64,000 nucleotides of DNA from positions 124,001 through 188,000 of the IMG/VR virus record IMGVR_UViG_3300034358_000008. The stretch is one strand, 5' to 3'. Shown here in pieces: positions 1,232 through 16,909 of this stretch. The position numbers and the translations under genes were made by a program. The notes beneath the pieces were generated by a model that saw only the letters and a list, made by a program, of their open reading frames with translations, did not search any database and was not told where the DNA came from. The number at the start of each line of letters is the position of its first letter. Position 1 is the stretch's first letter.

Positions 1232-2818
1232 ATGAAATTCGCTGTAACCAATGTGCAGGGCAATGGGTTTACTCAGGTAAGTGTTACACATGGCGATATT
1301 GAATTGCTATGGAGTGCACGTGCGTACAGTAAGGTTAAACTTCAAGATCCTAATCGGGTCTTCCGGGAGTTGAATGGCTATCTAGAAAACGTTGATGCAC
1401 CTACGCAAGATCGGTTGTTCCACAGCTATGAAGAAATCCACAAGCTGTTCAAGATGGGCTTCGATCCTTCGATGCTCGTTAGCAGTTTGATTCACCACAT
1501 CGGTGAGATCTATAAACAGATCCCAATGAACCGTCTGCGACGTTGGTTGTTGACTATCGGTAACTTGCACATCCCTGCTGATATCCAGGATACCATCACG
1601 GAAGACTCCCGCTATAACAAGCGTGAGCAAACTTATCTGAAGTCCGACTACATCAACATCGCAACTGTAGCCCTAGCTCTCCAAGCTATGATTCCAGTAT
1701 GGGGTGAGTACATTGATCAGTGTACCGATCAAGAGTTGTATAAAGAGAACAACGTAATCGGGTTGGTCTCTGAAACAGAACTGGCCAACTGGCCAATGGG
1801 TGAAGTGGATATGTTGGGGGAAGAGATCCCAACTGTATTCGATAAGCTCGGTGGTTATGTGAAGTATTGCGTTGACGATGAACCATTGTCGTTGGCTCGT
1901 GCTTGGGCAGGTCTGAGTTCCACAGACATTCGTGTGCTACTGCAATCTAAAGTGTTGGTACGTCGTCTGACTATCATTCCACTGAACGATCCAACCAGCC
2001 ACTCGATCGTAGCAAACATCTTCCGTTACGTGATGACTAACCTCACACCAGCAGAACGAAGCACAGCTGATCGTGTAGCGAAGAAACTCCCTGAAGGTGG
2101 CGGTGGCGGTGGTGATGACGAAGATAAAACATCGTTCATTGAATCACACAAAACCAAAGGTCGTATCAGTCCAGGTGACATCGAGGCTTACAACATCGAT
2201 GCAATGGATTATGAATTGCTAGCTGAAGAAGTAGATCCAACGATCTGCAAAACTAAACTGGCCCAGTGTATCAGTTGTATTCAAAGTGTCGGTAACGTAG
2301 AGATCCGTCCACACCAGATCCTGCTAGCACAGTGGGTAATGGCTAAAGCGTTTCCTGCACGAGCTTTCTACCATATCTCCAAACTCCCAGTGAACTACCT
2401 GTTGGCTACATCTCAGGCACTCCTGTGGCATTGGGGTTTCAACGATGCAGCTATCTTGATGCAGGTAGAACCGTTGCGTCATGGGGATCATAACTCCACG
2501 ACTCAACTCAACCAGACTCGTCAGGGTTCTCGTATCGCAAATCGGTTCCGTCCACAACTGGATGAACTGTATCCGCACATGAAACTTCAGAAGACTCCGC
2601 AAAATGGTAATGAGACTCCTAAGCCAGAAAACATGGCTGGTCTCGCGATCAACAACTGTAACCATTCTATCCGTGGCTCAAACTGGGTTTACCATGGACC
2701 AGATAAGTTGTTCAAAGAAGCTAATCAAGTAACCCATAACAAGGTTCTGATCCTTCCGCAGACCATCAAGCACACGATCACTGAAGTTGTGATTCACCTG
2801 GCTCAGATCAATCAGTAA
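1232..2818 (+). CDS. Non-virion RNA polymerase promoter-specificity (sigma-like) subunit, phiKZ gp68-like
   Basis: 528 aa; size and position between ChmC-like and PicA-like genes; SD GAGG. Confidence 0.75.
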   Translation: MKFAVTNVQGNGFTQVSVTHGDIELLWSARAYSKVKLQDPNRVFRELNGYLENVDAPTQDRLFHSYEEIHKLFKMGFDPSMLVSSLIHHIGEIYKQIPMNRLRRWLLTIGNLHIPADIQDTITEDSRYNKREQTYLKSDYINIATVALALQAMIPVWGEYIDQCTDQELYKENNVIGLVSETELANWPMGEVDMLGEEIPTVFDKLGGYVKYCVDDEPLSLARAWAGLSSTDIRVLLQSKVLVRRLTIIPLNDPTSHSIVANIFRYVMTNLTPAERSTADRVAKKLPEGGGGGGDDEDKTSFIESHKTKGRISPGDIEAYNIDAMDYELLAEEVDPTICKTKLAQCISCIQSVGNVEIRPHQILLAQWVMAKAFPARAFYHISKLPVNYLLATSQALLWHWGFNDAAILMQVEPLRHGDHNSTTQLNQTRQGSRIANRFRPQLDELYPHMKLQKTPQNGNETPKPENMAGLAINNCNHSIRGSNWVYHGPDKLFKEANQVTHNKVLILPQTIKHTITEVVIHLAQINQ

Positions 2819-2828
2819 GAGGTTACAC

Positions 2829-4517
2829 ATGCAGCATTTCAACACTGGCGCTACCGTAGGTAACTCTCCAGGCAACACTAAGATTCGTTTTGGTGAGAAT
2901 GGTTTCATTGCAGTTCAGACTGGTACCTATCAGGCTCAATATCTTCGGCCATTTAACCCGAACACTAACGAGAACGTTGTACGTCAACTTCGTGAAGCTA
3001 CTAACGAAGGTCTTAACCTCGGTGTCAGTGCAGTACAAGAGATTGCGGCAAACGTAATCACCCCAGCATCGATGGTTGAAGGCGAGGTAATGATTCCTGA
3101 AGGTTTCACTTCTCGTCGTTTCCGCATTATGTGTCGTGTCTTCGAAGAGCATCCGTTCTTCAAAGGTGCAACTACCCAACGGATCTTCTATGGTTATTCG
3201 GATCACTGCGATGCAACTTTGCAAAGCGGTCTCATGGACCCACGCATGCGGGTTTACTTCAACTCCGAAACCATCGTAGCTGAATCGATCATCAACACGC
3301 CTAACGGTCCTCAGACTCAAGCTAAGATCATCGGCTCTAACCAGATCATCTCTCCGGTGAACATGGTTGGTGGTGACAATGGAATGTTCGCGAAGCCTTC
3401 CAGCTTCCTGATCCGTCCTGAAGATAACTTCAACAAAATGCAAACTCGTGCTGTTGCAGAGAACCTGCAAAAGACTGGTTTGATCGATGTCAAGATCGAT
3501 GCTGAATACGATCACCGCACTATGGTTGGTGAAGGTGGCTCGTTCAAGTATTCGATGCGTAAGGATACTTCTCCAGTTCGTTATCTGTCGAGTTCGTTGA
3601 GTGCATATCAGCATGCTCGTAAAGAGTACAACTCGTCGACTCATGACACTGATGACATCCTGTTCAATCGCGGTACTGATTCTTCGGAAGTATTGTTTGG
3701 TGAAGCTGCGGCAATGTGTCGTAACAGTTCCATCACTAACAACACCTTCCTGCAAGTTCTGCGTGACCACACCGGTTACATGGAAAAGGGTTTTGTATTG
3801 TGGGGTGAGCTGTGTGGCTTGTTCCCAGAACTGATGCAGACCAACGTTGCTCGTTTCGCAATGGATGATGGTCGTAGCATCAAGCAAGTTTCCCATGCTG
3901 GTCAATCCCAGAACTGGAACGGCGCTGACTATACTTCTATCGGTGCATCGCTGTTGGCTCAAACCATTCCATCGATTATGATGGATACGTTCTTGCGTCA
4001 AGTATCGTTCGCTGTAACGAATGGTAATGGTCCGAATGAATATCTGTTCGAGATCCATGGTCAAGCATCTGCCAGTATCATCCGTGGGATTGACATGCGT
4101 CCATATCTGCTGGAGATGGAACGTCGAGTTAAGGTTGACGTACTGCACAACATCACCCGTGGTAACCAACTGCCATTCCGTATCTCTATGATCTCGGACT
4201 TGGCTGGTGAATCGATCATTGACATCTCGATTGGTAACGAAGCAGTAGAACGTTTCGTAGCACCGACCTTTGCTGATAGTCTGTTCTCCCCAGTTATCAC
4301 ACGTAACCATCAGCTATCTAGTAACATCGCTAACGATATTACTTGGTTGGTTAAGAAGGTTATCGATGGTGATAACGATGTTAGTAACTTCAATCAGTTT
4401 AACGCTCAACAGCAAGGCTATCAAGGGTACCAACATCCAGTAGCACAAGCTGCACAATTCAATCCTCAAATCTTTACCGGAGTGAGCAACAATGTCGCCG
4501 ATCTTGGTCTCCTATAA
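2829..4517 (+). CDS. picA: PicA/Imp1-like phage-nucleus protein import factor (phiKZ gp69-like)
   Basis: 562 aa; directly after the gp68-like gene; Q/N-rich C-terminal tail; SD GAGG. Assignment by synteny. Confidence 0.7.
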   Translation: MQHFNTGATVGNSPGNTKIRFGENGFIAVQTGTYQAQYLRPFNPNTNENVVRQLREATNEGLNLGVSAVQEIAANVITPASMVEGEVMIPEGFTSRRFRIMCRVFEEHPFFKGATTQRIFYGYSDHCDATLQSGLMDPRMRVYFNSETIVAESIINTPNGPQTQAKIIGSNQIISPVNMVGGDNGMFAKPSSFLIRPEDNFNKMQTRAVAENLQKTGLIDVKIDAEYDHRTMVGEGGSFKYSMRKDTSPVRYLSSSLSAYQHARKEYNSSTHDTDDILFNRGTDSSEVLFGEAAAMCRNSSITNNTFLQVLRDHTGYMEKGFVLWGELCGLFPELMQTNVARFAMDDGRSIKQVSHAGQSQNWNGADYTSIGASLLAQTIPSIMMDTFLRQVSFAVTNGNGPNEYLFEIHGQASASIIRGIDMRPYLLEMERRVKVDVLHNITRGNQLPFRISMISDLAGESIIDISIGNEAVERFVAPTFADSLFSPVITRNHQLSSNIANDITWLVKKVIDGDNDVSNFNQFNAQQQGYQGYQHPVAQAAQFNPQIFTGVSNNVADLGLL

Positions 4518-5841
4518 CAAATCTCTGATCGCATTCTCTCTCGTCACTGACGATGAAGATATGGTTAGTCAGAAACAACCAACCGGTACGCTGTCGCCAA
4601 TGAAGGTTGATGGTCGCCGGCTGGTATTGCCAACCAAAGCATGGCAACGCAAAGGCTATGGTGAAGACTATCAGCCGTATCACCCAGGTTGTGAAGTAAT
4701 GTCTCGTGAAGGTACTTCACCAGTCATTCAGATGATGCAACGTCAGGCTAAAGCTAGTATCGCTCACGCGGTAGTTAGCATGGGTCAAGGCTTGCTGCAA
4801 GTGGCTGTTGATAAAGACACTCACAAAGACCTGCCGCTCGAATGCACCGAGTTCCTGAAGAAGCTGTCCAATGCGGATAAGACTACTAAAGAACTATTCG
4901 AGAAGCTGATCTCTGCTGCCGTTAAGAAGAATCGTCTGTTGACGGTATATCTGAAGAATGGTGGTCAGTACGATGGTAAGAAAGTAAACCGTTCGTGTAT
5001 CATCCGTTTTCCGATCGTTGAAGATCTGAAAGCCGAATCCAAAGACAACGTTGTCTTGGGTGTTACTGTTCCGAAGAAACAACGCCCTACCTTGATCGCA
5101 CTGTTCGATCTGATCGTACCTAACGGCGAGAACCCAGAGGAATACTCCTTCGGTACTACTGCACGTGTGGCACCATACTTCATCAGTCTGCTGACAGCTT
5201 TCCACAAGATCGCTTCGGTACTGAATGAACTGATCGAAGCCTATGCGGTTAAGCTGCATATTCCAGTTAAGCCATTCGAGCTGTACGACCTGAGCATCGT
5301 TGACGACATCATCAAGCATTACGATGATATCCCACCGTACTCTGGTAACGAAGGTAAGACTGACGCTCAGCCAGAAGAAGCAAGTGAAACTGTGAGTGTG
5401 GTTAAGAAAGCTGCGGTTGCTAAAGCCCAAGCCGAGAAACCACGTGAAGCAGTTCCACAGTTGGTACGTGGTAGCGCTCAGGTACTGACATCCGCAGTGC
5501 CTGCAACGGTAGAACACGTTGGTAAGAAAGCCGCTTCCATGGCTGACTTCATGAATGCTACCCAACCTCAGGCAACTGGTGGTTTCCAACAGCATCAACA
5601 ACCACAATTGAACACTGGCTTCGTACCAGTAACGTTCAATCAACAGCAACCACAGTACGCACCACAATCGTTTAATGGTAATTTCAACGGCGGTGGTAAC
5701 AGCTTCGCTCCTGCTCCTGTAGCAGCACCAGCGTGGATGGGTGGTGGTCAACCAGCTGTGAATCAAGGTTCAGCAAACCCTTTCATGGCAGCAACAATGA
5801 CTGGGCACACCGGTAACAACGGTGGTCTTGGACTAATCTAA
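4492..5841 (+). CDS. Conserved chimallivirus protein (phiKZ gp70-like) with low-complexity C-terminal tail
   Basis: 449 aa; overlaps the end of the PicA-like gene; followed by a terminator. Confidence 0.7.
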   Translation: MSPILVSYNKSLIAFSLVTDDEDMVSQKQPTGTLSPMKVDGRRLVLPTKAWQRKGYGEDYQPYHPGCEVMSREGTSPVIQMMQRQAKASIAHAVVSMGQGLLQVAVDKDTHKDLPLECTEFLKKLSNADKTTKELFEKLISAAVKKNRLLTVYLKNGGQYDGKKVNRSCIIRFPIVEDLKAESKDNVVLGVTVPKKQRPTLIALFDLIVPNGENPEEYSFGTTARVAPYFISLLTAFHKIASVLNELIEAYAVKLHIPVKPFELYDLSIVDDIIKHYDDIPPYSGNEGKTDAQPEEASETVSVVKKAAVAKAQAEKPREAVPQLVRGSAQVLTSAVPATVEHVGKKAASMADFMNATQPQATGGFQQHQQPQLNTGFVPVTFNQQQPQYAPQSFNGNFNGGGNSFAPAPVAAPAWMGGGQPAVNQGSANPFMAATMTGHTGNNGGLGLI

Positions 5842-5853
5842 GAGACGGCATAA

Positions 5854-5891
5854 ACTGGGGTCTTCGGACCCCGGTGTATGTTTTATTTTTT
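5854..5891 (+). terminator. Intrinsic terminator (TTCG-loop hairpin plus T tract)
   Basis: ACTGGGGTC-TTCG-GACCCCGGT followed by GTATGTTTTATTTTTT. Confidence 0.75.
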
Positions 5892-5904
5892 CAAGGGGTA
5901 CCCG

Positions 5905-6159
5905 ATGTCACATCCGAACAATCTAAGTGATGAGTATCCATGTCAGGGTGATACTTGGGCTATTAGTCCGAGTGTATATAACTTCACTGTTGTATTGGTA
6001 ACCCCTAATGGAAAGATTCGTTATGTAGATAACATCCACTTAGGTAACCGACGTGTAAAAGAAACCGACCTTGATGGATTCAAAGCGTTTAATCTAGGTA
6101 AACCATTTATGGGTACCTATGAATTCATTGAACAGTTTGGCGTTACCGTTTCAGAGTAA
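5905..6159 (+). CDS. Hypothetical protein (~84 aa)
   Basis: ATG at 5905 follows AAGGGG SD; the ORF-track start at 5878 falls inside the terminator. Confidence 0.5.
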   Translation: MSHPNNLSDEYPCQGDTWAISPSVYNFTVVLVTPNGKIRYVDNIHLGNRRVKETDLDGFKAFNLGKPFMGTYEFIEQFGVTVSE

Positions 6160-6505
6160 TGAAGTATTGTTGTAGTTCCGCGATTGCTTCTGGATGCGGT
6201 TCTATATACGACGTTGGCTGCGCTCGGTTTAGCGGATCACGTAACTCACGACCAAACTGATTGGGGTTAGTCATTCCATTAACCCTTGTGAACAACCAGT
6301 GTGTTTCTAGGGTGTGACCTTTGGACAGCAAGAAGCCTGAGAAGTCACCCTCGAACTGATATAGCTCTGCTGGGGTCAGTACATGGCGAACTGCATATAA
6401 CGTCCTGAGCTGGTTCATGTGCATTTCTAGGATATGCCTGAACTCTGGGTTGTAGAACATATTCGCCCCAGGTGATTCCATAAGTAGTTTAATTGTAAAA
6501 GCCAT
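6143..6505 (-). CDS. Conserved hypothetical protein, possibly LysM/T4 gp53-like baseplate protein
   Basis: 120 aa; SD GGAG; pattern YQFEGDF...HWLFTRVNGMTNP resembles the W-x4-N-x3-[DN]P end of LysM/gp53 folds. Confidence 0.5.
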   Translation of the reverse strand: MAFTIKLLMESPGANMFYNPEFRHILEMHMNQLRTLYAVRHVLTPAELYQFEGDFSGFLLSKGHTLETHWLFTRVNGMTNPNQFGRELRDPLNRAQPTSYIEPHPEAIAELQQYFITLKR

Positions 6506-14008: not shown

Positions 14009-14050
14009 GCCCCCTCCGATTGGAGGGGGCAATATGTTCTTTTTTTTTTT
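14009..14050 (+). terminator. Terminator between convergent genes
   Basis: GCCCCCTCC-GATT-GGAGGGGGC followed by an 11-T run. Confidence 0.8.
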
Positions 14051-14053
14051 GCG

Positions 14054-14434
14054 TTATCCCAACCCTTTAAGGAGTTGGTTTGCACTGATCCCTTCTTGAA
14101 CCGATTTAGATTCAGCTATGGTTACCATGAACCGAGCGTCATCGAAAGGTAGTTCGAAGAACTCATTGATGCTGAGTCCGTTAACTAGATGGATACGGTA
14201 GTTAATAAACTTACGTTGCCATGTTCGTCTAGGGCCACCTTCAATGATGTTTTCCTTAGGATGCAATCGCACTAAGTCTAAGGGGTCATTGGTTTGGTGC
14301 GTGCAGATACCGCGATCTTGTTGATACGCTTTGCGGGTGACCATCTGTGTAACTACGGGGCGCATCGGTCCCTGAGTCATATAGAGATCTTCCAGTTTGG
14401 AGTTCTCTATTTCCTGCAAACCGAATGACAGCAT
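14054..14434 (-). CDS. Chaperone 'T'-like domain; probably also or only made as a -1 frameshift extension of the 530-aa gene
   Basis: GLSINEFFELPFDDARFMV resembles the gpT/gp51-type motif; frame stays open upstream through the TTTTTT run at 14541-14536. Confidence 0.6.
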   Translation of the reverse strand: MLSFGLQEIENSKLEDLYMTQGPMRPVVTQMVTRKAYQQDRGICTHQTNDPLDLVRLHPKENIIEGGPRRTWQRKFINYRIHLVNGLSINEFFELPFDDARFMVTIAESKSVQEGISANQLLKGLG

Positions 14435-14499
14435 CGTGACGTGTCCATCCGGGTCGGATAGGTCAATTCCTAACCGACTGGATTTAGGGTCTTTAGCTT

Positions 14500-16092
14500 C
14501 TACCCCTGGTGAGACACTTTCCGGGCCGCTAACGTAAAAAACGTTGAGAGCATGTCAATCGGTACCAAGTGCGGCAACCGTTCGTTGAATGCAATCCCTT
14601 GTGGGGACTTACACGTCGAGCACTGGTGCGATGGGATAGCGATTACACCAATGATAGATTCGTTAGCGTACGCGTTAACACGTTCAACGAATTTGTCGAA
14701 GTACTCATGTTCCGAAATAGTCGAGGAAATGAATTCCATGATAACTTCAGGATCGTCCGTAAAGAGCTGGTCTTCAAAGTCTACGGCTTCTTCATCTTTC
14801 AGGTAGATTGCAGACACCCAGTGTGCGTACTGAGTCGCTTTGGTAGCCGATTGCAGACGACGGATGTACTCGAACCGCTGATTACCGTCTGGGGACTCGT
14901 TAAAGGCTCCCTGAGACATTTCGATGAGAGTATCGTACCAAAGCTTAGCTGCGATACGACGTTCAGCTACGGACGGTGGAGACAGTTTGATACCAACGTC
15001 ATTCAGCCAGACAACCTTAGCGTTACCGATACTGAATGCCTTACGGTATTCAACGAAAGCATCTTCTGGTTGTGCGTCCAAACGCTTAGCGATGAACTTA
15101 CGTTGTTCGATGGTGTATACCGAGTCATCGTAGTTAACGATGTTCGACATGTTCATCTTAAACTCAGTTACGCCAGAGCAGTTACGTGGATCAGCGATAC
15201 ATGGTACCGAGTAGTTGAAACCATCAGGGTACATTACCGATGCCAGTGCGTGATGCAGAATGCACTCGTCAAAGATACTGATCTCAGACTCAAGGTCCGA
15301 TGGAGTTTTGTACTGACGGTTAGAGCTAGTAACACAACTCATAGCCAAATCAGTTACAGCATCCAGCATACGGAAGCTTGCGTGAGAGAATGCCAAACCT
15401 TTGGTGTCGTTACCGAGTTGTACACGGATAGACTGGAGTTCAGTTTGCATTGCTACTACTTCACCCAGCGAAGGACGACGCAGCCGGACCCAAATACCAG
15501 AGTGTGGCAAGAAGGTTTCGTATGTACCACCCATACCCGAACGATAGCTCAGGTAAGCCAGTGCGGCTTCTTTGGATTGACGCTTAGATTTGTCGTAAGT
15601 CTGTGCAGGACGACCCGGACGAACCAGCTTGGTATGGTTTGGTACAGAAGCACCGTCACGCCAGAAAGAACCTTCACGACTGAGAGCACCAGTAGGAGCT
15701 TCATCAAGAGAGATGTTCTGCAAACCAGAGATCAATGCTGCCAGCCACTTAACGTCGGTGCTAGTATTGGTGAGTTCACCATTACGCATTGCTTCTAGCA
15801 GTTCGTTGTTACGTTCGAGAACTTCGTTAAGCGTATTGAAGTTTTCACGTACGTAAGAGATGATTGGCAGTTCACCTTTAATAGGTTCGCCAGCAGCTTT
15901 ACGTTCGTGTTGGAAGTTTTGCTCAGTCTGTAGTGGAGTCCACAGTTTTTCTGGCTCAGGTTCTGGCAGGTCCAGATTAGGTGGCATACCAACAGACTCA
16001 GGAGATGCTACAAACTCATTGGTATAGTCATCTTCTGTATCGAACCGATCAGGTACTTGTACTTCAGATTCGATGTTTTCGTTATCGCCCAT
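14500..16092 (-). CDS. Tail/baseplate-hub assembly chaperone-like protein (phiKZ gp77 position)
   Basis: 530 aa; LPHSGIWVRLR, C-x6-C and CSTC zinc-type motifs, FF near the C-terminus; resembles T4 gp26/gp51-type chaperones. Confidence 0.55.
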   Translation of the reverse strand: MGDNENIESEVQVPDRFDTEDDYTNEFVASPESVGMPPNLDLPEPEPEKLWTPLQTEQNFQHERKAAGEPIKGELPIISYVRENFNTLNEVLERNNELLEAMRNGELTNTSTDVKWLAALISGLQNISLDEAPTGALSREGSFWRDGASVPNHTKLVRPGRPAQTYDKSKRQSKEAALAYLSYRSGMGGTYETFLPHSGIWVRLRRPSLGEVVAMQTELQSIRVQLGNDTKGLAFSHASFRMLDAVTDLAMSCVTSSNRQYKTPSDLESEISIFDECILHHALASVMYPDGFNYSVPCIADPRNCSGVTEFKMNMSNIVNYDDSVYTIEQRKFIAKRLDAQPEDAFVEYRKAFSIGNAKVVWLNDVGIKLSPPSVAERRIAAKLWYDTLIEMSQGAFNESPDGNQRFEYIRRLQSATKATQYAHWVSAIYLKDEEAVDFEDQLFTDDPEVIMEFISSTISEHEYFDKFVERVNAYANESIIGVIAIPSHQCSTCKSPQGIAFNERLPHLVPIDMLSTFFTLAARKVSHQG

Positions 16093-16094
16093 GT

Positions 16095-16787
16095 TTAAGC
16101 CTCAATATTCAATTCGGTGATACCAACAGCTTCCAGTTCTTCCATCAGGACTAGGATCAGCGGTTGGACAGCTTGTTCGATGTGACCTTGGATCTTGGTA
16201 TAGTCCATAGTCAGTTTGCTGATGAGTTCGATGTCAGCTGGGGTAGGCTTACCTTTCTTACCGGTAGCTTTCTCGCCCAGAGCTTTGACAGCAACCATCA
16301 AATGCGTGATGTCATTGGAGAGCGTATCGAAACGCTTTTCGAACCCTTCGGGATCAGTCAGTTTAAGTTTGTAGTCTTGAATATTAACGCCGACCGGCAG
16401 AACAAACAGGCTGGTCTGACTAATTGAATTGAGTGCAGCTTCTTGCATTTGATGAACGATGCTCCAACCATCTTGAGCGAGTAGCTCATTGGCAGCTTCA
16501 GCAGATTGTTCGATCACTTTGTTCATGTCTACGTTTGGAGTTTCTTGTTGCATGGTGGATTCCTTGTTAAAGATCTTGTCGAGCGCAGCAGAGAGTCTTG
16601 CTTCGTCTTCGGGAGTAGGTGGTGGTCGACCGGCGAACTCATGTGCATTAGCGATGGTAGAGAGATCACGACCTTCTACTTGGGCGACATGTTTCAATGC
16701 AGTCACAAGACCAGCTTTTTCTTCTTCGGTCCAAACATGGGGTGGGTGACCAGTCGGAGCTTGGAAATGACAGAGGCTAAGGTCCAT
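16095..16787 (-). CDS. Hypothetical protein (phiKZ gp78 position)
   Basis: ATG at 16787 after AAGGA; second SD-led in-frame ATG at 16553. Confidence 0.6.
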   Translation of the reverse strand: MDLSLCHFQAPTGHPPHVWTEEEKAGLVTALKHVAQVEGRDLSTIANAHEFAGRPPPTPEDEARLSAALDKIFNKESTMQQETPNVDMNKVIEQSAEAANELLAQDGWSIVHQMQEAALNSISQTSLFVLPVGVNIQDYKLKLTDPEGFEKRFDTLSNDITHLMVAVKALGEKATGKKGKPTPADIELISKLTMDYTKIQGHIEQAVQPLILVLMEELEAVGITELNIEA

Positions 16788-16909
16788 TGGATTTTCCTTA
16801 CGGCACGGTTGATAACATAGATAATACACCTTCGGTAATCTTTGTTCCTTATTAAAGAGTACGGTGCTACCTAACGGTATGTTAAACCTATCTACCTAAA
16901 GGTACTTAA

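Follow-up and report, generated by a model that had tools for sequence, protein, structure and literature searches.

A candidate −1 frameshift site at a run of six T's is conserved in nucleus-forming jumbo phages

The locus described here lies on the minus strand of a 64,000-nucleotide stretch of viral DNA (the window; positions 124,001 to 188,000 of IMG/VR record IMGVR_UViG_3300034358_000008). It consists of a 530-residue open reading frame (ORF) followed, after an apparent gap, by a 126-residue ORF. Near the end of the longer ORF the sequence reads ACG TTT TTT ACG, and the −1 frame that contains the downstream ORF is already open at this run. A shift of one base at the run would therefore join 519 residues of the first ORF to a further 160 residues, giving a fusion of 679 amino acids. 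From the upstream TGA onward, the −1 frame reads H A L N V F Y V S G P E S ... G H V T M before continuing through the ATG of the annotated small ORF. The Cys pairs C298/C305 and C491/C494 and the motif GLSINEFFELPFDDARF are also present. The sequence observations in the original prediction, including the position of the T run, the −1 overlap and the length of the fusion, are correct to the base. Coordinates of the individual features are collected in the table.

Features of the frameshift locus; coordinates are positions in the window
Coordinates	Strand	Feature	Observations
16095..16829	−	Upstream gene of the same operon (position of the phiKZ gp78 / 201phi2-1 gp137 homologue)	Stop lies 3 nt before ATG 16092
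14500..16092	−	Zero-frame gene, 530 aa, of the phiKZ gp77 / 201phi2-1 gp136 family (PHROG 4585)	Ends at TAG 14502-14500; AF2 model pLDDT 84.6, pTM 0.82
14555..14557	−	TGA in the −1 frame, five codons upstream of the slip site	Marks the 5′ limit of the stretch in which the −1 frame can be entered
14536..14542	−	Slippery heptamer G_TTT_TTT (Phe518-Phe519); T6 run at 14541-14536	The proposed −1 shift re-reads T14536 as the first base of TAC (Tyr)
14503..14535	−	Dual-coding overlap (11 codons before the TAG)	Zero frame TLAARKVSHQG; −1 frame YVSGPESVSPG
14435..14499	−	Apparent intergenic stretch (65 nt) that codes in the −1 frame (VEAKDPKSSRLGIDLSDPDGHVT)	Holds no start codon; the PHROG 12109 profile extends into it; aligned by tblastn in 69 phage records
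14432..14434	−	ATG taken by ORF callers as the start of a 126-aa gene (14054..14434)	First ATG/GTG/TTG in this frame; lies inside the conserved domain; is Phe or His in Phabio and phiKZ
14054..14536	−	−1-frame extension, 160 aa plus TAA (14056-14054): a roughly 45-residue predicted flexible linker, then a predicted helical domain (PHROG 12109; PHIKZ076.4 / 201phi2-1 gp135 family)	
14009..14030	.	9-bp G+C-rich hairpin between the convergent genes; likely transcription terminator at the end of the operon	Flanked by an A11/T11 run (14040-14050); phiKZ-type RNA-seq contigs end just past the orthologous stop

To determine whether this arrangement is more than a chance occurrence, related loci were compared. 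Conservation of the T run and the −1 overlap in orthologues had been proposed beforehand as a test, and both features are retained in phiKZ gp77/076.4, 201phi2-1 gp136/gp135 and PhiPA3 074/073. In all 73 loci examined, the domain matching the downstream profile lies in the −1 frame relative to the upstream protein, and its stop-to-stop ORF overlaps the end of the upstream gene and reaches back over the T run. The more distant Cronobacter phage CR5 and Klebsiella phage Miami show the same organization. The layout is kept in every sampled lineage of nucleus-forming jumbo phages.

Codon choice at the site is strongly nonrandom. When the loci were grouped into 39 clusters at about 70% nucleotide identity, the conserved Phe-Phe was found to be encoded as TTT-TTY, with the first Phe being TTT in 38 of 39 clusters. 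In contrast, TTT makes up only 31% of the other Phe codons in these genes, and several G+C-rich phages have ratios of 0:14 to 0:21. The joint log10 P is −22.4, although this value is uncorrected for shared ancestry. The base preceding the first Phe codon is T in 30 of 39 clusters, which gives a canonical T_TTT_TTY, and N_TTT_TTY is present in 38 of 39. The heptamer in the window matches the X_XXY_YYZ consensus at six of seven positions, and so its P-site tRNA would need to re-pair with a mismatch at the first position.

After the site, the −1 frame remains open for at least 150 codons in every cluster, whereas the +1 frame remains open for a median of 10. In many lineages the last −1-frame stop is located 3–12 nt upstream of the site, and it is never located downstream. 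Moreover, in 26 of 39 clusters the first ATG, GTG or TTG in the −1 frame lies more than three codons inside the conserved domain. In phiKZ, for example, this codon is at position +86, while homology starts at +27. The 65 nt between the TAG and the ATG of the window also evolve as −1-frame coding sequence, with 10, 8 and 26 substitutions at the three codon positions. Gene callers assign ragged N-termini to the downstream protein, and searches for natural in-frame fusions of the two parts found none. All 79 representative clusters of the downstream domain are 93–175 aa in length.

The 60 nt following the site are no more stable than other 60-nt windows of the same gene (mean MFE percentile 0.6 over 57 loci), and a search for a conserved downstream hairpin found none. 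No upstream SD-like element is evident. However, such stimulatory elements are not obligatory for phage sites. RNA-seq contigs from four studies of phiKZ-type infections span the gene end, the junction and the downstream ORF, and they show the genomic T7 without an indel, although assembled contigs drop rare variants. Sequencing runs for the window itself yielded only DNA metagenome contigs and no RNA.

The best explanation for these findings is a programmed −1 ribosomal frameshift, and we favor this reading with moderate confidence. In this view, ribosomes translating the 530-aa gene reach G_UUU_UUU, where a fraction slip back one base as tRNA-Phe re-pairs on UUU. One mRNA would therefore give two proteins, the 530-aa product and a 679-aa trans-frame product carrying a C-terminal flexible linker and helical domain, with the junction predicted to read ...STFF/YVSGPESVSPGVEAK in the window phage and ...STFF/YFGGLEVK... 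in phiKZ. Because in most relatives this domain has no initiation codon of its own, it is probably made mainly or only as the fusion. The sequence anatomy, its conservation, the codon bias and the coding signature of the linker are established by our analysis. In contrast, the existence of the fusion protein, slippage by the ribosome rather than the RNA polymerase, the efficiency of the shift and the function of the products are inferred. No junction peptide or ribosome profiling evidence was found in the searchable literature, and the Grad-seq paper supplements that were searched do not list PHIKZ077 or PHIKZ076.4.

Neither the genome records inspected nor the papers searched mention this frameshift. 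Literature searches for a described frameshift in phiKZ gp77, or in jumbo or Chimalliviridae phages, returned none, and the mentions of "gp77" that were found refer to the numbering of other phages. If correct, our interpretation would revise the annotation of a gene found in every sampled lineage of Chimalliviridae, including phiKZ, 201phi2-1, PhiPA3, SPN3US-like phages and PCH45. In these phages the downstream ORF is called with arbitrary starts, truncated (PHIKZ076.4 at 80 aa) or left unannotated. It would also add a family-wide recoding event to a phage group that is under intense study for its nucleus and for therapy, and would provide a testable handle on the function of two "hypothetical" proteins. 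The site would likewise be a clean natural case of a U-run slip site without an obvious stimulator.

Other explanations for the same pattern are possible. The phage or host RNA polymerase might stutter on the T run and add one U to a fraction of the mRNAs, which on standard translation would yield exactly the same 679-aa protein. This alternative is less likely but is not excluded. Most relatives carry T7 or T8, no conserved ribosome-stimulating structure was found, and these phages transcribe with their own unusual multisubunit RNA polymerases, whose genes flank this locus. However, some lineages have only T5 (PS119XW, with ATA TTT TTC, and the clade labeled L025 among our loci, with GTT TTT), which is short for polymerase stuttering. 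The absence of an indel in the RNA-seq contigs also argues against this possibility, within the limits of assembled data, and the register N_TTT_TTY fits tandem re-pairing of tRNA-Phe.

It is improbable that these are simply two ordinary genes, with the small protein starting independently at ATG 14434 (or at varying or noncanonical starts in relatives) and the T run and −1 overlap arising as by-products of a conserved Phe-Phe. Phe518 and Phe519 are indeed conserved residues of the upstream protein, and so part of the T run would be present in any case. Likewise, two genes are called by annotators everywhere, and because the window and some relatives have an in-frame ATG, some independent initiation at 14434 cannot be excluded. 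However, this view does not account for conserved coding sequence upstream of any start codon in 26 of 39 clusters, for the preference for TTT over TTC, for a −1 frame that is invariably open exactly from the T run onward, or for the third-position substitution bias before the ATG. Furthermore, there is no good SD before ATG 14434, and some phiKZ-type records cannot annotate the downstream ORF at all and leave about 500 nt blank. An assembly or sequencing error, or a recently broken single gene, might be suspected since the window comes from a peat metagenome assembly and homopolymers are error-prone. This possibility is effectively refuted by the same frame relation in more than 70 independent genomes and contigs, including cultured, finished phages, with run lengths from T5 to T8, and by the absence of an in-frame version among the 79 clusters.

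The U-run slip site has precedents. A run of six identical bases is a recognized backward-slip motif in annotated phage frameshifts (PMC10885494). The P2 E/E′ pair uses T_TTT_TTG. Re-pairing of tRNA-Phe on a U run also occurs at other −1 sites, such as U_UUU_UUA of HIV-1, and spontaneous slippage on slippery mRNA has been examined in Escherichia coli (PMC9307594). The present site differs from these U-run sites in that the second codon is UUU or UUC and no downstream stem-loop is conserved.

The original prediction interpreted the locus as a tail assembly chaperone like the lambda G/GT pair, and this interpretation is only partly supported. As in lambda G/GT and the −1 frameshift reported to be conserved among the tail assembly chaperones of long-tailed phages (Xu, Hendrix & Duda 2004), the slippery heptamer lies a few codons before the stop, the downstream ORF is in the −1 frame and usually lacks its own start, and two nested products sharing an N-terminal body are predicted. 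In both cases the arrangement is conserved across a whole phage group despite sequence divergence, and no strong stimulatory structure is needed. However, the short product is 530 aa rather than about 100–150 aa, and the gene is not placed between the tail tube and tape-measure genes. Its neighbors in the relatives whose annotation was inspected are RNA polymerase β′ subunits, a helicase and small ORFs; the unusual size and the lack of a nearby tape-measure gene had already been noted in the prediction. Pfam assigns no family to the upstream protein and gives only a subthreshold MUG113 match (E 0.07) for the downstream piece, the corresponding PHROGs are of unknown function, and tail-chaperone models in BFVD match only at E 0.3–2.

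The downstream part had also been proposed to resemble gpT or gp51, which is not supported. This domain has no detectable relative outside its own family. Comparison of the downstream family with T4 gp26 and gp51 by hhalign was not significant, and an ESM Atlas shape search gave nothing above TM 0.37 by query. Searches of the PDB by sequence profile and by Foldseek gave no meaningful match for either part, and VIA-align returned only a helical hairpin at Z ≤ 6.5.

Instead, it is the upstream protein whose predicted fold weakly resembles the T4-type baseplate-hub assembly proteins gp26 and gp51 (PF12322, T4_baseplate). The predicted fold of residues ∼200–520 matches T4-like "baseplate hub assembly protein" models in BFVD (E 3e-5 to 1e-3, TM by target 0.52–0.57), an AFDB "phage baseplate protein" cluster (E 1.3e-3, TM 0.56) and an ESM Atlas cluster partly annotated PF12322 (TM 0.47). 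Both have Cys pairs, and some GenBank records name the jumbo-phage homologues "baseplate hub." In contrast, the protein is twice the size, and the PF12322 HMM gives no hit at E ≤ 5 for the window protein or for three distant orthologues, whereas T4 gp26 and gp51 score 216 and 178 bits. There is also no hit to this HMM anywhere in the 325-kb genome. Comparisons of the upstream family with T4 gp51 and gp26 by hhalign, as single sequences and as a nine-sequence alignment, were not significant; the profile–profile comparison gave a probability of 29%, over the CxxC stretch only.

These weak similarities leave plausible, but do not show, a tail or baseplate assembly role that works like G/GT. With less certainty than for the frameshift itself, we infer that the upstream protein is a nonvirion assembly factor with a gp26/gp51-like fold, for which the short form would provide a common body and a minority long form would carry an extra docking domain. 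A further possibility, which remains tentative, is that throughout the nucleus-forming jumbo phages the small "gene" is not a gene but a domain made only by recoding at a U run, whether by the ribosome or by stuttering of the phage's own RNA polymerase. The two-product, gp26/gp51-like assembly factor that it defines would be the giant-phage counterpart of the G/GT tail chaperone, which is not known to have been identified in T4-like and jumbo myoviruses. If the fold link to gp26/gp51 holds, frameshift-made short and long assembly factors are not confined to the classical tail-chaperone families, which bears on how very long contractile tails and their hubs are built. T4 gene 26 also yields two nested products, 26 and 26′, but 26′ is made by internal initiation in the same frame rather than by frameshifting. 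In the 201phi2-1 record, neighboring gene products are marked as found in virions by mass spectrometry but gp136 and gp135 are not, as expected for an assembly factor.

The original prediction placed a run of six T residues near the end of a 530-aa ORF, with a second ORF open in the −1 frame, and this description proved to be exact in every detail. The T run falls on two adjacent Phe codons, and 11 further codons are read before the zero-frame stop. The −1 frame is open from a TGA codon just before the run to the end of the downstream ORF, and within it the annotated ATG is the first ATG, GTG, or TTG codon. A slip on the T run therefore yields a protein of 519 + 160 = 679 residues. The prediction's interpretation was partly supported, in that recoding at this run is very likely, whereas the proposed identity with a tail-assembly chaperone and the proposed resemblance of the downstream part to gpT or gp51 were not borne out.

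Coordinates of the features described, in the window unless another locus is named
Feature	Coordinates	Strand	Description
530-aa upstream ORF	16092..14500	minus	Upstream protein
TGA	14557-14555	minus	Stop in the −1 frame
T run	14541-14536	minus	ACG TTT TTT ACG; the two TTT codons are Phe518 and Phe519
TAG	14502-14500	minus	Zero-frame stop
ATG	14434	minus	First ATG, GTG, or TTG of the −1 frame
126-aa downstream ORF	14057-14434	minus	Weak MUG113 match at residues 70-101
TAA	14056-14054	minus	End of the −1 frame
A11/T11 run	14040-14050		Adjacent to the hairpin
Hairpin	14009-14030		9 bp, G+C-rich
End of the convergent gene	13998	plus	Faces the minus-strand gene ending at 14054
phiKZ locus (L002)	2050-2267		Downstream ORF called as a truncated PHIKZ076.4
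Two phiKZ-type GenBank records (L076 and L077)	1850-2360		Region after gp77
Val-Phe slip site (locus L025)	about 2968-2979		ACC GTT TTT ACG
Serratia phage PCH45 (locus L008)	2240-2380		Long dual-coding overlap
Reference locus for RNA-seq contigs (L016)	3355-3371		Downstream ORF stop at 3362
T4 gene 26 / 26' (locus L073)	5803-6429		Nested products sharing a C-terminus

The sequence is part of a 324,912-bp viral contig from a peat metagenome, and its closest cultured relative at this locus is Pseudomonas phage 201phi2-1 (73.5% nucleotide identity). The upstream protein belongs to the family that includes phiKZ gp77, 201phi2-1 gp136, and PhiPA3 gp074 (PHROG 4585), whereas the downstream ORF belongs to PHROG 12109, together with 201phi2-1 gp135 and PHIKZ076.4. 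The neighboring genes encode RNA polymerase beta' subunits, a helicase, and small ORFs. This is not a tail module. The PHROG 12109 profile matches better when the −1-frame stretch upstream of the ATG is included (191.6 versus 175.3 bits). Likewise, when the 164-aa stop-to-stop −1 ORF was used as a tblastn query, it aligned from its first residues in 69 phage records, across the end of the upstream gene.

To examine how widely the arrangement is conserved, nine annotated loci and 63 IMG/VR loci were collected. In all 73 sources, the domain matching the downstream profile lies in the −1 frame relative to the upstream protein, and its stop-to-stop ORF reaches back over the end of the upstream gene. 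The same is true of two more distant groups represented by Cronobacter phage CR5 and Klebsiella phage Miami. After dereplication, 57 distinct junctions remained in 39 clusters at about 70% nucleotide identity. The conserved Phe-Phe is written N TTT TTY, and the first Phe codon is TTT in 38 of 39 clusters even though TTT accounts for only 31% of the other Phe codons of these genes. Several G+C-rich phages otherwise use TTC exclusively (TTT:TTC ratios of 0:14 to 0:21), and other Phe-Phe and Phe-Leu dipeptides in the same gene tails start with TTC. Under the background usage of each gene, the joint log10 probability is −22.4. This value is an overstatement because the lineages are related, but the direction of the bias is unmistakable.

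The base preceding the run is T in 30 of 39 clusters, which gives the canonical T_TTT_TTY heptamer. In contrast, the sequence studied here carries G at this position, as do PhiPA3 and Phabio. One clade has Val-Phe with only five T residues, and one protein has Leu-Phe (these exceptions comprise proteins P0051-P0053 and P0017), yet the −1 ORF is still intact. The minimal shared element is therefore T_TTY at the second codon, which suggests that only this portion of the site is indispensable. In PCH45, the zero frame continues for 44 codons after the slip site, compared with 8-21 codons elsewhere, and thus its dual-coding overlap is unusually long.

Several characteristics indicate that the downstream domain lacks its own start. 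After the site, the −1 frame is open for at least 150 codons in every cluster, whereas the +1 frame closes after a median of 10. Stop codons in the −1 frame often lie 3-12 nt upstream of the run, but never between the run and the downstream domain. In 26 of 39 clusters, the first ATG, GTG, or TTG codon of the −1 frame lies inside the conserved sequence. In phiKZ it is at codon +86 while homology begins at codon +27, and in Phabio the corresponding codons are +57 and +25. The motif D-P-x-G-H-V-x4-F-G sits before any start codon in these phages. Moreover, when the sequence studied here was compared with its three closest relatives, the substitutions in the 65 nt between TAG and ATG fell 10, 8, and 26 times on −1-frame codon positions 1, 2, and 3, respectively, which is the signature of coding sequence.

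The annotation of the downstream protein is consistent with this view, since gene callers give it ragged N-termini. An exhaustive HMMER search of 1.84 billion representatives recovered 79 related clusters, all of 93-175 aa, and none was a long in-frame fusion. The upstream homologs all end shortly after the FF motif. GenBank records either call two genes with arbitrary starts, truncate the second (PHIKZ076.4 is called at 80 aa in phiKZ), or leave about 500 nt after gp77 without annotation, as in other phiKZ-type records, although the whole stretch is an open, conserved −1-frame sequence. None of the records inspected annotates a joined CDS.

The best explanation for this pattern is a −1 ribosomal frameshift in which tRNA-Phe re-pairs on the U run. 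No conserved stimulatory hairpin was found, and the 60 nt following the site are no more stable than the rest of the gene, but phage tail-chaperone sites often lack such a structure too. However, the identical protein would be made if RNA polymerase were to stutter on the run and add one U. Two observations argue against this alternative. Some lineages have only five T residues, and RNA-seq contigs from four studies of phiKZ-type infections carry the genomic run without an indel across a contiguous gene end, junction, and downstream ORF. Contigs hide rare variants, and therefore polymerase stuttering, although unlikely, remains open. Sequencing error or a broken gene is excluded by the breadth of conservation. 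Taking the ribosomal and transcriptional versions together, some form of recoding at the T run is very likely on this nucleotide-level evidence. The arrangement is conserved throughout the sampled nucleus-forming jumbo phages and goes unmentioned in the records and papers inspected. No description of this frameshift was found in the searchable literature, although that collection is incomplete and earlier work in subscription journals cannot be ruled out.

The AlphaFold2 model of the upstream protein is confident (pLDDT 84.6, pTM 0.82), but searches of solved structures revealed no relative. Apart from jumbo-phage orthologs, residues ∼200-520 match predicted models of T4-like baseplate-hub assembly proteins of about 250-285 aa in BFVD (E 3e-5 to 1e-3, TM by target 0.52-0.57). 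They also match an AlphaFold DB "phage baseplate protein" cluster (E 1.3e-3, TM 0.56) and an ESM Atlas cluster that is partly annotated PF12322 (TM 0.47). T4 gp26 and gp51 both belong to PF12322, and some GenBank records already name jumbo-phage homologs "baseplate hub." However, sequence-level tests do not support this assignment. There is no PF12322 HMM hit, and hhalign reaches a probability of only 29% over the CxxC stretch, and thus membership in this family is unproven. The 201phi2-1 record marks the neighboring gp138 and gp139 as found in virions by mass spectrometry, but not gp136 or gp135, which fits a nonstructural assembly factor.

The appended part is modeled as a flexible linker of about 45 residues followed by a helical domain (pLDDT 81.7), and searches with it returned no informative relative. 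A Pfam match of the 126-aa ORF to MUG113 (PF13455) is weak and below threshold (E 0.07, 14 bits against a cut-off of 22.3), and is probably noise. The original prediction had likened the downstream part to gpT or gp51, but the resemblance to gp51 and gp26 belongs instead to the upstream part.

By analogy, the system would work like lambda G/GT and P2 E/E', where a slip a few codons before the stop appends an extra domain to a fraction of an assembly protein and the arrangement is conserved across a phage group. It is not a member of that class by sequence, fold, size, or genomic position. The closest family by predicted fold is T4 gp26/gp51. T4 itself makes two nested products of gene 26 by internal initiation, in which the second product, 26', shares the C-terminus of the first, and this is a different route to two related hub proteins from one gene. 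Whereas the sequence arrangement and its conservation were observed directly, the tail or baseplate assembly role and the analogy with G/GT are inferences that are plausible but tentative.

Features near the end of the downstream ORF may relate to transcription termination. A G+C-rich hairpin with an adjacent A11/T11 run lies between the convergent genes and looks like a shared, possibly bidirectional, terminator. RNA-seq contigs from two phiKZ-type studies end within about 10 nt of the stop of the downstream ORF, whereas contigs from two other studies carry an extra A after position 3363 relative to the L016 reference. These differences may reflect a transcript 3' end and a strain difference.
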